Source: Podarcis liolepis
Lineage: Eukaryota
DNA: 64,000 nucleotides
Assembly: GCA_965112155.1 (NCBI GenBank)
Contig: OZ218103.1
Direction: 5' to 3' (one strand)
Part shown: positions 3,105-62,378 of the stretch, piece after piece
Layout of the letters: each line of letters opens with the position of its first letter
Numbering within the stretch: position 1 is the first letter of the stretch
Translations under genes and position numbers: made by a program
Notes under the pieces: generated by a model
Seen by the model: the letters and a program-made list of their open reading frames with translations, nothing else
What the model was told of the DNA's origin: nothing
Database searches by the model: none

Positions 3105-3891
<787 letters not shown>

Positions 3892-17164: not shown

Positions 17165-17728
17165 AAAATAAAAAAAATCCTTCCAGTAGCACCTTAAAGA
17201 CCAACTAAGTTAGTTCTTGGTATGAGCTTTCGTGTGCATGCACACTTCTTCAGATACACTGAAACAGAAGTTGCCAGATCCTTCTATATAGTGAGAAGGT
17301 GGGGAGGGGTATTACTCAGAAGGGTGGTGGGAATGGGAGATTGGCAGATAGCTGAGATGAGCCTGTTGACGACTCTTAACGACTGCAATAGGTCTTACAG
17401 GAAAAGGCAAGGGGTGAGAAGGTGAAAAATGACTTAGTCATGTATAATGAGATCAGTCATGTATAATGAGTAATACCGCTCCCCACCTTAATGAGATAAG
17501 AGATGAGATATTAGTCATGTATAATGAGATAAGTCATGTATAATGAGTAATACCCCTCCCCACCTTCTCACTATATAGAAGGATCTGGCAACTTCTGTTT
17601 CAGTGTATCTGAACAAGTGTGCATGCACACAAAAGCTCATACCAAGAACTAACTTAGTTGGTCTTTAAGGTGCTACTGGAAGGAATTTCTTATTTTGACT
17701 ATGGCAGACCAACACGGCTACCTATCTG
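17165..17728. mobile_element. Penelope-like retroelement remnant with inverted pseudo-LTR arrangement
   Basis: About 150-bp inverted arms. One arm carries an extra tail gactatggcagaccaacacggctacctatctg. 12-bp TSD taagaaaagttc/taaggaaagttc. Same family as 50241-50463. Confidence 0.85.
17220..17257 (-). ncRNA. Minimal type-I hammerhead ribozyme motif, intact core
   Basis: Minus strand reads GUAU-CUGAAGA-A-GUGUG(CAUG)CACAC-GAAA-GC-UC-AUAC: 4-bp stem I, stem II, conserved CUGANGA and GAAA boxes, palindromic AGCU in place of stem III. Confidence 0.75.
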
Positions 17729-39140: not shown

Positions 39141-39720
39141 CTATGGTTTCATCATAGCCTGCCCCTGTGGTGAACGCTGCATGGTCTTTTTGTGTCCAAA
39201 TATCTCCTGGAGACTCAGTTCCTTTTCCCAGGCAGGAGCGTTCTTGTGGCGAATGTAGCGGGCTTTCCTAGCTTCCGCATAAGACTTTAGGAAATCTGGC
39301 CTGGCATACATGGTCCTGAGGCGTCCATCTGCTGCATAGGCCTCTGGATCCATGATCAGCCTCTCAGGCCCAAGGGAAGGCCTTCGTTGCCCTGGGAGAG
39401 TCACGAGCTTAGTGCCCTTGGCTCCACCAGCAGCTCTGCTCTCCTTCTCTGCAGGCCCTTCCCCTTGGCCCTCGGTTCCATCTGCTTCCTCTCCCTCCCC
39501 AGCCTCTGAGGAGATGCACAGCTGCTTGGCGATGGAGTCCTGTAGGGTGGCGATGTCCCTGTCAGCAGTGGTGTTTGGGTCTGTGACATTCAAGGGGGGC
39601 AAGTGCCCTTTTCTGCCCTCTTCATTTCTTGCGACATCACCATCAGGCTTCTGTAGATACAAGGAAGGCTGGCTTGTCCCTGGAAAGCCTCCTGCCTTGG
39701 CCAGTGTTTTCCTCTTGGAT
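39141..39720 (-). CDS. CCDC190: Coiled-coil domain-containing protein 190, last coding exon
   Basis: Acceptor ttttcttctag|A. SKRKTLAKAGG...PDFLKSYAEARKARYIRHKNAPAWEKELSLQEIFGHKK...KP*. Matches the conserved ARxAxYxRH...LSxxEIFGH motif of CCDC190, and sits tail-to-tail with HSD17B7 as in other amniotes. Confidence 0.9.
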
Positions 39721-49418: not shown

Positions 49419-50240
49419 TGTGTTCTCACCTAATCTTTAAAGCACGAAGGATGTCAGTTTGCAGAAGGGCCGCCGGGAGGCGCCTGGAACCCACGACTGC
49501 CCTGTCCTTTTCAGGCCAGCTTTGTATTGTTCTTATTAAAGGTAAAGCTTCATCTCTCTTTTTTGCCAGCAAAGCATTTCTCCTTCCCGGGGCTGGACTG
49601 CCCAACTGGCAGGCTGGGCACATGACTGGGGCATCAGCAAAGCAGGAGACCAAAAAACGGAGAGATTTTTAATAAGGTAAACTAAAACAGGAGGTCTATG
49701 CCATGCTGTTAAAGGCACAGGAAGAAGATAAAGGAAGAAGAGGAGACTTAGACATACGACTTGGCAGGACTGTTCCAAGTGTGGAGACAGGAGAGGTTGC
49801 GGCTCCAAGATGCCATCACAAGACGGAGTCAGAAGGGGAAAGGACAACACGGAAAAGCTCATTTTGTGAAGCTCAGGGAACACCAGCCTTTCCCGGCCTG
49901 GTCTCCTCCAGGTCTTCTGAGCTACAACTGCCATTTTTTCTGCCCACTCAACTAGTCAGGGCAGGCTAAGGGGGGCTGATGGGTGAGGTAGTCCCCAAAA
50001 ATCCGGAGGGCACAGGTTTGGGGAGGTTGGGCTGGAATTAGACCTTCAGGCTGATCAGTATACAGTGGTACCTCGGGTTAAGTACTTAATTCATTCTGAA
50101 GCAAAGTTCTTAACCTGAAACTGTTCTTAACCTGAAGCACCACTTTGGCTAATGGGGCCTCCTGCTGCTGCCGCGCCGCCGGAGCTAAATTTCTGTTCTC
50201 ATCCTGAAGCAAAGTTCTTAACCTGAAGCACTATTTCTGG

Positions 50241-50463
50241 TTCCAGTAGTAGATAGGTAGCCGTGTTGGTCTGCCATAGTCAAAATAAAAAAATTCCTTC
50301 CAGTAGCACCTTAAAGACCAACTAAGTTAGTTCTTGGTATGAGCTTTCGTGTGCATGCACACTTCTTCAGGTATCTGAAGAAGTGTGCATGCACACGAAA
50401 GCTCATACCAAGAACTAACTTAGTTGGTCTTTAAGGTGCTACTGGAAGGAATTTTTTTATTTT
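50241..50463. mobile_element. Penelope-like palindromic insertion
   Basis: Perfect 89-bp arms (50282-50370 / 50375-50463), one-sided tail agataggtagccgtgttggtctgccatagtc, exact 12-bp TSD cactatttctgg (50229-50240, 50464-50475). Confidence 0.88.
50371..50408 (+). ncRNA. Minimal type-I hammerhead ribozyme motif, intact core
   Basis: GUAU-CUGAAGA-A-GUGUG(CAUG)CACAC-GAAA-GC-UC^AUAC, with predicted cleavage after 50404. Confidence 0.75.
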
Positions 50464-50706
50464 CACTATTTCTGGGTTAGCGGAGTCTGTAACCTGAAGC
50501 GTATGTAACTTGAAGCATATGTAACCTGAGGTACCACTGTATTTGAAAAGTGACTGTGAAGGGGAGCAATGCCCCTTATTATTAAGCAAGATAGCTAAAG
50601 TAAGGGGGTCACGTCCTCCATTGTGACACGTCCCCCTGCTGAGTGACTTGGCTGAGCACTTTGGGAAGAGCAACCATTTGAGGATAGCCAGTGAGGGAGA
50701 TCAGAG

Positions 50707-50747
50707 ATGTTGTGGGAGAGATTGCAGAGACTCTCTTTGTCTCAAGT
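50707..50747 (+). CDS. Unrecognised small gene, predicted coding exon 1
   Basis: gagATG with in-frame upstream TGA (50692-50694). MLWERLQRLSLSQ(V), donor |gtaagt. Confidence 0.55.
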
Positions 50748-50864
50748 GTAAGTAGGATTTCTCCTCCTTTCTGAAACGTAGGGGAGGTTTAGCTGCCAGG
50801 TGCCCCAAATCCAGCACAGAGATCTCTAGAACCCATTTCCTCATTGTTTCCTCTTCTTCCCTAG

Positions 50865-51076
50865 GTTCCGAAGTCTGAGGCGGCTCCGCAGGCTGCTGGT
50901 CTCCTGCTGCCGGTTGCCCAAGATACATCCCCTGGTCTGTCAGGAGGAGGAAGGAGATGAGTGGAAGGAGGAGGTCAACATCATGAAGGACGGGAAGGAG
51001 GAGAAGGTGAAGATAAGATCGATTTTTGTGAGACCATGCGACCAGGGGATGGAGTCCACTGATAACAACGTGGATG
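50865..51076 (+). CDS. Unrecognised small gene, predicted coding exon 2
   Basis: tttcctcttcttccctag| ... |gtgagt, 212 bp, open. FRSLRRLRRLLVSCCRLPKIHPLVCQEEEGDEWKEEVNIMKDGKEEKVKIRSIFVRPCDQGMESTDNNVD. Confidence 0.65.
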
Positions 51077-51221
51077 GTGAGTGTTGATTTTTCTTCCTCA
51101 GGAACAGGGAGACCAGAGAAAATCTGGCAGTGGGGCGAGGGTGGAGGGAGCAGAAAGATGGGTTATCAGCATAAGAATCAATTAAAATATTAAGAATCAT
51201 TTCTCTTCTTTTCTCTTCCAG

Positions 51222-51316
51222 GCAACGGCAGCAGTGAGACCAGCAGCTCAAGCGGAGCTCTTACCCCCCTCCCACACCCAGTTCCCCCCTCCCCACAATT
51301 CCAAATTTATAAATAA
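51222..51316 (+). CDS. Unrecognised small gene, predicted coding exon 3
   Basis: ttctcttcttttctcttccag|. (G)NGSSETSSSSGALTPLPHPVPPSPQFQIYK*, with the TAA lying inside AATAAA 51312-51317. Confidence 0.55.
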
Positions 51317-51371
51317 AGAAATATAGAAATCATTTTTGTATGGATTCTGTTAAGTTGTGGGTGAACATATC

Positions 51372-53690
51372 CAGGGGCGCCGACTTATAAAAAATATTGG
51401 GGGGGCCCATACCGCTGGTTCGCTCGGGTAGCCGGGAGAACGCAGTTCAAGGTGGCGGTGTTGGGGAGAGACCCTCGCTCAGGGCGCCACTAGACTTGGC
51501 GGCCGGCGGCCTATCTGGGGGGTTCTGGAGCGTATTTCGGCGGAGCGATTGGGGAGGAGGGGGCTTGTTGCCGGATTCTTCAGCTGAGCCGGAGATCCGC
51601 TGCTGGGGGTCCCTGGGCCGAGTTGTGAGCACGGCCTGCTGAAGGGAGATCCAGCCGATTGCGCGACGGGGACGGCCGGGGCTCTCCGGCTAGGGCGCGC
51701 GGCTGGCTGGCTGGCGAGGGAGCAGGTGGGGAGGAGGCGGGGGTCCTCACTCTCTTAGGAAACGCACCCGCGCGCCCGATTGCCACGAAGTCCGAAGGGT
51801 GCGTGTGTGGAATTAAAAAGCAAAAACGAGATATGGGCAGGGCAGGCAAAGAGTTTTCTGCAAGAGGATGGAGGGCAGGTAGAAGAGAAAATCACTCAGG
51901 ATGAGACAGTCAAATCAGCCATGATAAAATGGGCTCAGGATATTGGGTATAACATCATGTTTGAGGACTGGGAAAGGTTATGGACCACCGGAATGAAATT
52001 CACGGCATGTAATGCCTTGAAGGAAAATATTATGAAAATGATTTATAGGTGGTACATGACCCCAGTCAAGCTTGCAAAAATATATCACCTGTCTGATAAT
52101 AAATGTTGGAAATGTAAGGAGGCTGAAGGGACATTCTTTCACCTCTGGTGGACTTGTCCAAAAGTGAAGGCCTTCTGGGAAATGATCTATAATGAGTTAA
52201 AAAAGGTATTTAAGTATACCTTTCCCAAGAAACCAGAGGCCTTCCTCTTGGGCATTGTTGGCCAGAAAGTGTTAAAGAAGGATAGAACTTTCTTTATGTA
52301 TGCAACTACAGCAGCAAGAATACTTATCGCAAAATATTGGAAGACACAAGATTTGCCCACACTGGAAGAGTGGCAGACGCAATTGATGGACTACATGGAA
52401 CTTGCTGAAATGACGGGCAGAATCCGAGATTTGGGAGAAGAAACAACGGAAGAGGACTGGAAAAAATTTAAGGACTATTTACAAAAACAATATAAGTTAT
52501 ATGAATGTTAAAAATTTACACGATTCGGAAACTATAGCTTCAGCAATTAGATTTGGGAAACAGGAAATTATATTTTAAGTAAGAAAAGGTCAAAATCTAA
52601 GGTAATACTATGTTTAATTTAAGATATAAGTAACTGATGAAAAGTATGTTAAATTTAGAGGTATAGTATTTGAAAAGTACAAAATAAGGTACGAAACAAG
52701 GTAATAATTTGCTGATATCTTTATTATAAAGAATGCAGGGTAAGGGAGATGCGAGGAAGTCCAGTTAGTTATATAAAAAATGTGTTGAATGGTTGGTTTT
52801 CTTTTCTTCTTTTTCTTCTTTTCTTTTTCTTGTTCTTTTACTTTTTTCTTCAGTGTATGTTTCTAACTTTGTATTTGAAAACTTAATAAAATATTTATAA
52901 AAAAAAAGAAGAGAAAATCCTTTCGCTTTTCTGGGGCGCAGGGAAGTCTCAGAGCCGGAGGTTGGGGAAGGGACCCCCTTTGCTCTGCCCTCTTCTCCCG
53001 TCTTAGATTTGCATGGGGGTCCCCGCCCGAGCTTGCCTGGCCACCGGGCCACACAAGGGCCACGCTCTACGCGGCGCACCTTGCTAGCTGCGCAGCTGTC
53101 CTCCGTGGCTGCGGAGCGGCCCTGCGCCGGTGCCCAGCCCCTCTGGGCACCCGCTGCGCTGCCAATGACAAGCGGGCGACGTCGCGGGCGGGGAAGGCGT
53201 CGCTTTCTTTCCCGATCCTTCATCCTCCCAGTCTTCCAGCCCTTTTTGGGGTTGGAAGCTCGTCTCGTTCGCCCTTCTCCTTTCTTCACCCTGCGCGCAA
53301 TTTTCCTCCCTCGTCTCCCTCTCCATTTCTCCTTCCTTCCTTCCTTCCTTCCTGACTGACTGACTGACTGACGGGCTTGGGCTTGGGCTTGGGCTCGGGC
53401 AGCCACAGCGTCGGCGGTGTTGGCGATCGGCGGCGCGGGGGGATGGCCCTCCCGGGGGAGCCGGCGCTGCTCAATGGGGTTGCCAAGGAGACAGGCCGGC
53501 CGCCCCCCTCCCCCGGCCCAGCGCCCCCCGCCGCGCCGGTGCCCGTTATCGAGCTGGTGCGCGCCGGGCGCCCTATAAAAGCCGCGGACGCGCCCACCGC
53601 CGCCCGAGATTATTGGGGGGGCTGAGCCCCCCCAAACAAATTTTTGAGGGGGCTCGAGCCCCCTCAGGCCCCATGGAGTCGGCGCCTATG
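51372..53690 (-). mobile_element. Family A hAT element, long form with a different CpG-rich interior
   Basis: TIRs caggggcgccgact / agtcggcgcctatg, exact 8-bp TSD aacatatc. Sub-terminal sequence is shared with 3561-3891 and 62034-62378. Confidence 0.9.
51894..52906 (+). mobile_element. 5'-truncated young L1-like LINE (ORF2 C-terminus with zinc knuckle)
   Basis: Open frame to 52511 including CWKCKEAEGTFFHLWWTC (CCHC), then AATAAA and an A-tail. 13-bp TSD agaagagaaaatc (51881-51893, 52907-52919). Confidence 0.92.
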
Positions 53691-62033: not shown

Positions 62034-62378
62034 CAGGGACGCGGACTTATAAAAAATATTGGGGGGGGGCCCGGGAAAGCTCATGAATAATAAATAAGCT
62101 CATGAATATGCAAATAAAGTGGCGCCGCCTCCTCGTGAGCGAATAGGGGAGAGTGTGCTGCGCCTATTAATCAGCTCCGAAGGAAATTGGGTGGAGCTTT
62201 TGCTCGGGAGGGAGGGCAGGAGGCATGCAGCCCGACCCTTTGCATTTTGGGCTGGGGGAGGGGCGGCGGTGGCGCTCTGCTGGAGGGGCACCGGAGATTA
62301 TTGGGGGGGCAGAGCCCCCCCAAACGAATTTTTGAGGGGGCTCGGGCCCCCTCAAGCCCCATGGAGTTGGCGCCTATG
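62034..62378 (-). mobile_element. Family A hAT MITE, short form
   Basis: Inverted near-copy of 3561-3891 with exact 8-bp TSD gggaaagg. Confidence 0.92.

Follow-up and report, generated by a model that had tools for sequence, protein, structure and literature searches.

A 64,000-nucleotide (nt) stretch of contig OZ218103.1 from the lizard Podarcis liolepis (assembly GCA_965112155.1; hereafter the window) carries on its plus strand, at 50707-51316, a compact gene of three coding exons. It is a genuine protein-coding unit and an intact copy, and we consider it likely to belong to an undescribed multigene family of 86-122-aa proteins that is so far lacertid-only and clustered on one autosome of Podarcis lilfordi. 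The gene is built from the following parts.

50707-50747, plus strand: coding exon 1, 41 nt (13 codons plus 2 nt), with the ATG at 50707-50709.
50748-50864, plus strand: intron 1, 117 nt, with donor GTAAGT (50748-50753) and a pyrimidine-rich tract followed by AG (50863-50864).
50865-51076, plus strand: coding exon 2, 212 nt, whose translation can be read directly.
51077-51221, plus strand: intron 2, 145 nt, GT..AG, with donor GTGAGT (51077-51082) and a pyrimidine tract followed by AG (51220-51221).
51222-51316, plus strand: coding exon 3, 95 nt, with the stop TAA at 51314-51316.
51312-51317, plus strand: AATAAA polyadenylation signal, overlapping the stop codon.

The splice phases fit (41 + 212 + 95 = 348 nt, or 115 codons and a stop), and an in-frame TGA (50695-50697) lies four codons 5' of the ATG. 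An earlier note on this DNA had listed the donors, acceptors, intron lengths, phases, upstream stop and AATAAA; every one of these signals is where that note had placed it, and the three exon translations agree with the 115-aa product that it had joined. Exon 2 encodes a basic amphipathic helix ending in Cys-Cys, the motif KIHPL, an acidic linker and a core of the form K-I-R-x-I-F-V-x-P-x-D-Q-G-M. Exon 3 encodes a Ser-rich acidic stretch and a Pro-rich tail. Both strands of the window were scanned for an ATG, GTRAGT donors, acceptors with at least 13/16 pyrimidines plus AG, two introns (each 60-300 nt long) and a reading frame that stays open for 300 nt or more. The locus at 50707-51316 was the sole one to qualify, besides a variant of it with an AG 9 nt further in, and none of 20 shuffled windows passed the same three-exon rules. 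Thus, the three-exon structure is not a chance assembly.

Database searches were made with the exon peptides singly and, as full-length query, with a natural 115-aa relative (P0002). The exon-2 peptide matches two P. lilfordi entries named 'Hypothetical predicted protein' (114 and 115 aa) with 97% and 96% identity (E = 1.7e-38 and 1.6e-37), and the clusters of exon-2 matches hold CAI5776277, CAI5776316, CAI5776326 and CAI5776332 together with XP_077784320.1 of Podarcis muralis. A tblastn search with P0002 covers window exons 1-2 and exon 3. Against 1.84 billion representatives, phmmer with P0002 gave eight matches at E < 1e-3, each labelled one from a lacertid; they include more P. lilfordi proteins (47-57% identity), one Zootoca vivipara model and two unlabelled contig open reading frames (ORFs). 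A profile search of 5.8 billion clusters added six P. lilfordi models (CAI5776467, 468, 473, 484, 493 and 494). Neither search found a homologue from outside Lacertidae, bar the two unlabelled contig ORFs, in line with the lineage-specific origin that the earlier note had proposed.

The same note had suggested looking for paralogues, and these proved abundant: at least 14 P. lilfordi models belong to the family, in the accession ranges 776253-776332 and 776467-776495, and they are 33-94% identical. All 14 lie on a single 96.96-Mb chromosome, so that the family looks clustered and lacks the scatter of a transposon. The window gene has the family's splice layout, with three coding exons cut after '...SSQV' and after the '...D/N-G' codon. 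The near-invariant residues L18, R20, K33, L37, I67, V69, P71, Q74, G75 and T79 (P0002 numbering) are all kept in its exon 2. Pfam gives no match for the exon peptides or for 16 family members, save two single-member matches at chance level (E ~0.16-0.17). The best E value in a profile search of the PDB is 4.3, Foldseek returns nothing at E <= 0.001, and the ESM Atlas offers no usable neighbour. A literature search found no paper citing any family accession, and a general search on orphan genes gave nothing specific.

The closest known relative is CAI5776316.1 of P. lilfordi, which has CAI5776326, CAI5776332 and CAI5776277 as near paralogues and shares the length (115 aa) and the three coding pieces of the window gene. 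The two proteins are 96% identical over exon 2 and, by eye, ~94% identical overall; they differ at seven residues and share the tail '...PSPQFQIYK'. On this comparison CAI5776316.1 is probably orthologous to the window gene, or else paralogous and very near to it; it carries no function, name, domain or publication. The more distant P. lilfordi members (CAI5776253, 467, 468, 473-475, 484 and 493-495) have in common with the window protein the exon-1 start, the helix, KIHPL, the core, the Ser-rich stretch and the Pro-rich tail, and the helix and hairpin predicted for them are also the same. They differ in their lower identity (33-57%) and in a shorter acidic linker; P0012, P0017 and P0010 are without the Cys pair, and some of the distant models run on wrongly into the leader or intron 1. 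The P. muralis model LOC144327739 (XP_077784320.1, 104 aa) has the family's exon-2/3 sequence but another short first exon and a frameshifted tail.

In Z. vivipara the family appears under a different name. The 'quinone oxidoreductase-like protein 2' (XP_060133428.1, 278 aa) is 83% identical to P0002 over 79 residues. This model and XP_034979467.1 (P0006 and P0013) are chimeric: an oxidoreductase part of ~200 residues (PF00107) is joined to a last 78 residues that correspond to family exons 2-3, and the join of oxidoreductase to exon 2 is in matching splice phase. The chimera is the product either of read-through splicing or of an annotation artefact, and besides the Zootoca one no long fused family models were found. 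An origin of the family from an oxidoreductase was considered and rejected, there being no oxidoreductase exons in the window. The HMMER oxidoreductase alignment runs briefly into the family part of the chimera, which looks like chance.

The window gene is therefore a new, unannotated member of a family that has been predicted automatically and never described, and that is restricted to lacertids; it is neither wholly unrecognised nor a dead copy. The term 'unrecognised', used in the earlier note, is right for the mammalian interval only, since near-identical models have been deposited for P. lilfordi (CAI5776316) and P. muralis (XP_077784320.1). The note's alternative of a recently dead copy of a dispersed family is correct as to multiple copies and unsupported on the two other points: start, splice pairs, frame and near-invariant residues are kept, and the copies are on one chromosome.

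RNA data were taken from four runs of four studies, namely three sets of contigs that are probably RNA (X1, X5 and X7) and raw bulk RNA-seq reads (X21). In the RNA of close relatives intron 2 is removed: the exact joint 51076/51222 (145 nt skipped, GT..AG) occurs in all four runs, carried by contigs in X1, X5 and X7 and by four raw reads with four different starts in X21. The other junction that the earlier note had named for checking, 50747/50865, was seen in 0/4 runs. Each exon-2 piece listed shows 1-6 differences from the window, and the best-matching DNA-type runs share only 0.29-0.35 of the 31-mers. The sequences in these runs therefore belong to paralogues or to a related species or population. 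What the RNA backs is the family gene model, expression of the window copy itself being unproven. For exon 1 and the intron-1 junction the supporting evidence is family conservation (see below). An alternative upstream exon was also considered, because one X7 contig departs from the window at 50863; its 30-nt loose end, like that of an X1 contig at 50687, is absent from the window. The X7 loose end resembles the pyrimidine tract of a paralogue, and we read it as unspliced paralogue sequence and reject it as an exon.

Read in the proposed frame, exon 2 shows purifying selection. DNA-level differences were collected from the read and contig pieces of a related lizard aligned to window exon 2. 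Ten of the 14 differences are synonymous in the proposed frame versus 21% expected (binomial p = 7.5e-5), compared with 3/14 and 0/14 in the other two frames, and the ratio of non-synonymous to synonymous differences per site (pN/pS) is ~0.11. At greater distance, paralogues 33-57% identical to P0002 hold a series of conserved blocks in frame on both sides of the length-variable linker: the exon-1 start with (R/K)(L/I)SSSQV, L-R-R-L-R-x-L-L-(A/V)-S-C-C, KIHPL, K(I/L)RxI(Y/F)VxPxDQGM(D/E)xT, S-E-(A/T)-S-S-S and the Pro-rich tail. The first of these is retained in P0007 and P0012, which are 43-56% identical. Models that read through splice sites preserve the signals themselves in translation. 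At the intron-1 acceptor the window reads HCFLFFPR/FRSLRR (the slash marks the cut) and P0009 and P0018 read FVTFFLFFPR/, so the acceptor region is conserved across subfamilies; at the intron-2 donor the window reads DGEC followed by a stop, versus NGEC in P0009. The start codon, the splice signals and the 5' leader are conserved across divergent paralogues.

The leader and the two repeats that flank the gene are as follows.

50579-50706, plus strand: family-conserved 5' leader (promoter-proximal region or 5' untranslated region, 5'UTR), matched by RNA contigs and by P0015.
50060-50542: Tc1/mariner-type miniature inverted-repeat transposable element (MITE), terminal repeat TACAGTGGTACCTCGG..., carrying a nested hairpin repeat.
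51780-52511, downstream of the gene: L1-like ORF2 tail, a 243-aa ORF with a weak zf-RVT match and a CWKC...HLWWTC motif.

RNA-type contigs of three runs cover the leader at 50579-50687, at depths of up to 294, and their flanks are unlike the window after 50687. Translations of the leader, 'SSIVTRP' and then 'LLSDLAEHFGKSNHL', agree with the wrongly extended N-terminus of P0015, a distant paralogue. Since the true coding part of P0015 is only ~45% identical, the leader DNA appears to be better conserved than the coding sequence. The leader contains two direct copies of CACGTCC (50610-50616 and 50627-50633). The earlier note had placed motifs here, and their position is correct (50608-50615 and 50622-50632, 75-99 bp 5' of the ATG); its description of them as resembling a cAMP response element (CRE) is not, for both the full site TGACGTCA and the half-site TGACG/CGTCA are absent from the motifs at 50608-50633. 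As the CACGTCC motifs lie under RNA contigs, they may belong to the 5'UTR and not to the DNA upstream of the start site. With a GC content of 0.47-0.51, the leader forms no CpG island. Just before the leader, at 50569-50598, is an upstream ORF of nine codons (MPLIIKQDS, then a stop), which is relevant only if transcription starts upstream of 50569; raw reads over 50545-50604 hint at such a start.

Several observations weigh against a working coding gene at this locus. In the four runs the intron-1 junction is absent and exon 1 (bins 50695-50754) has zero depth; the tail at 51265-51324 has zero depth in all of them as well, and the 3' end of the RNA was not observed. To these gaps is added the lack of an exact exon-2 match. 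Contigs still carrying intron 2, in which 6 nt are deleted at 51133, reach about the depth of the spliced ones. Close paralogues use two frames for the last ~16 residues, which are therefore weakly constrained. The family's protein models derive from automatic annotation, which for P. lilfordi merged transcript assemblies (heart, kidney, liver, lung and tail) with ab initio predictors (PMC10214862). Translation of the family proteins is suggested by sequence evidence. Lastly, the MITE stops 37 bp short of the conserved leader and 165 bp 5' of the ATG, and its insertion may have cut the copy off from upstream control DNA.

The two tail frames have a simple cause. P0001, P0003, P0004 and P0005 end differently ('...SSPLPTIPNI') because the C-run at 51264-51269 differs in length by one base. 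The tail '...PSPQFQIYK' is common to the window and P0002, and the distant P0012 ends in '...PSPQSQIYK'; since the window's frame is thus shared with a distant member, that frame looks ancestral.

Two explanations would account for some of these points. The locus and its relatives might be transcribed and spliced without being translated, as long non-coding RNAs with an incidental open frame. Frequent intron retention and the doubly read tail are consistent with this, as is the fact that NCBI pipelines annotate almost no copies as proteins; the protein is moreover predicted to be mostly disordered, with a predicted local distance difference test score (pLDDT) of 0.34 in the Atlas and a mean of 60 in AlphaFold. 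However, only the proposed frame shows an excess of synonymous changes, in-frame blocks flank the length-variable linker in 14 paralogues with identities as low as 33%, and the start codon is conserved. We regard a non-coding family as improbable.

Alternatively, the family is real and the window copy is a silent or decaying duplicate, its frame intact and its expression lost after the MITE inserted 5' of the leader. The position of the MITE, the zero depth over exon 1 and the 3' tail, and the differences in every listed exon-2 piece would all follow; with at most 0.35 of 31-mers shared by the best-matching DNA-type runs, no run comes from the same genome. The last fact cuts both ways, because the runs evidently represent a different species or population and the absent exact matches then tell little. 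The start codon, four splice sites, frame, stop, AATAAA and all near-invariant residues are intact, and the tail is in the apparently ancestral frame. A silent copy seems to us unlikely, if less so than a non-coding family, and we retain the interpretation as an intact coding member.

The unit lies between a MITE and an L1-like ORF2 tail, and its leader is found under many contigs with unlike flanks. Both observations would be expected if the exons were the cargo or part of a transposable element and the gene family actually a repeat family. The earlier note had held that a match to such an element would speak against novelty. A similarity search of the window detected no second copy of the gene unit (50543-51345) in the 64 kb, versus at least eight for the true MITE, which has at least seven others besides the one at 50060-50542. 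No terminal repeats bracket the unit and it contains no transposon domain. The confinement of 14/14 P. lilfordi models to one chromosome and their divergence, like that of old paralogues (33-94% identity), argue in the same direction. We give a transposable-element origin very little credence.

The predicted protein was examined with AlphaFold and the family alignment for two subfamilies. In both, a helix (residues 11-28 and 5-22) terminates in Cys-Cys and is followed by a β-hairpin (residues 49-64 and 32-52); the hairpin reaches pLDDT values of 75-92 in the AlphaFold models and the remainder is of low confidence. The helix is Arg-rich and strongly amphipathic (hydrophobic moment 0.58-0.68), it contains LxxLL in nearly all members, and Cys-Cys stands at its end in 13/16 family members. 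Neither a signal peptide nor a transmembrane segment is seen in the sequence. The models thus suggest an Arg-rich amphipathic helix leading to Cys-Cys, a ~20-residue hairpin on an invariant I..V.P..QG core, a disordered Ser/acidic stretch and a Pro-rich tail.

We speculate on the mechanism from these features. The basic helix, together with S-acylation of the Cys pair, would hold an intracellular adaptor on a membrane; through strand addition the hairpin core could dock onto a partner, and phosphorylation might regulate the Ser-rich acidic stretch. Such a membrane-attached, Cys-acylated adaptor is the likeliest mechanism we can propose, but we hold it tentatively and think it may well be wrong. 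Retention of the Cys pair in 13 of the 16 members is only suggestive of palmitoylation. RGS4 and RGS16, GAP-43 and SCG10 are peripheral membrane proteins anchored at their N-termini by a basic amphipathic helix and palmitoylated cysteines. The family proteins resemble them in having a basic amphipathic helix beside a cysteine pair, a small, mostly disordered body and no transmembrane segment. However, they have no detectable relationship to them in sequence or fold, and their Cys pair follows a helix of ~20 residues, whereas in RGS4/GAP-43-type proteins the cysteines are at the extreme N-terminus. The likeness to RGS4/16 and GAP-43 is an analogy of mechanism only, not homology.

Against the adaptor mechanism it must be said that it is drawn from sequence features, and that the helix could be a mitochondrial presequence or an LxxLL protein-binding helix. 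A presequence would make the protein a small factor of the matrix or inner membrane instead of an acylated adaptor. It would fit the high hydrophobic moment, the abundance of Arg, Leu and Ser in the helix, the scarcity of acidic residues among the first ~35 and the lack of a signal peptide. However, the conserved Cys-Cys and KIHPL come right after the helix, where they would often be removed with a cleaved presequence or adjoin it; their conservation suggests a role in the mature protein. Subfamily A, in addition, has an acidic residue at position 4. A mitochondrial factor is thus a doubtful alternative, and we continue to favour the membrane adaptor.

Upstream of the gene in the window are a tyrosine-kinase exon (3135-3584; Pfam PK_Tyr_Ser-Thr, 5.4e-28), whose sequence we take to resemble DDR2, and the last exon of CCDC190 on the minus strand (39141-39662; Pfam CC190, 1.6e-8). 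The earlier note had assigned the locus to the CCDC190-RGS4 interval; the CCDC190 side is confirmed by this exon, and on the RGS4 side no RGS motif occurs in any frame of the window. The locus lies in a block of well-conserved synteny, with a tyrosine-kinase/DDR2-like exon followed by CCDC190; in mammals this block lacks the family, so that its birth could be dated by comparison of squamate genomes.

Taxonomically restricted families are a main source of lineage-specific biology, and few vertebrate examples come with clear evidence of selection. The present family is compact, multi-copy, expressed in relatives and under purifying selection. We may imagine, with little expectation that the whole of it will hold, a young family born within or just before Lacertidae, possibly from non-genic DNA, and expanded to at least 14 clustered copies on one autosome; it would encode Cys-acylated membrane micro-adaptors, and its leader would act as a common transcriptional or translational switch, perhaps of a stress or hypoxia type. 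If this were true, a leader of ~100 nt with twin CACGTCC that is kept more strictly than the proteins would point to a family-wide switch. There is also an annotation gap, in that RefSeq-type pipelines mostly overlook the family or build chimeras such as the Zootoca 'quinone oxidoreductase-like protein 2'. In practice the family has moderate value, as a clean candidate in which to study gene birth and expansion and to test a new helix/Cys-Cys/hairpin module.

Some features of the surrounding repeats deserve mention. The core of the nested insertion in the MITE is a hairpin (50276-50469) with 95-nt arms that are 99% complementary, and the nested hairpin repeat as a whole (50241-50469) matches 17165-17727 at 94-98% identity. 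Rfam at gathering thresholds detects no hammerhead and no other RNA family anywhere in the window. On the 3' side, a GC-rich patch (0.67-0.72) at 51400-51800 lies directly 5' of the L1-like 243-aa ORF. Just 3' of the gene, at 51372-51414, is a repeated piece of ~40 nt that is also present at 3855-3891 and 62034-62067; it lies under many high-depth RNA contigs with differing flanks and is therefore probably part of an abundant repeat.

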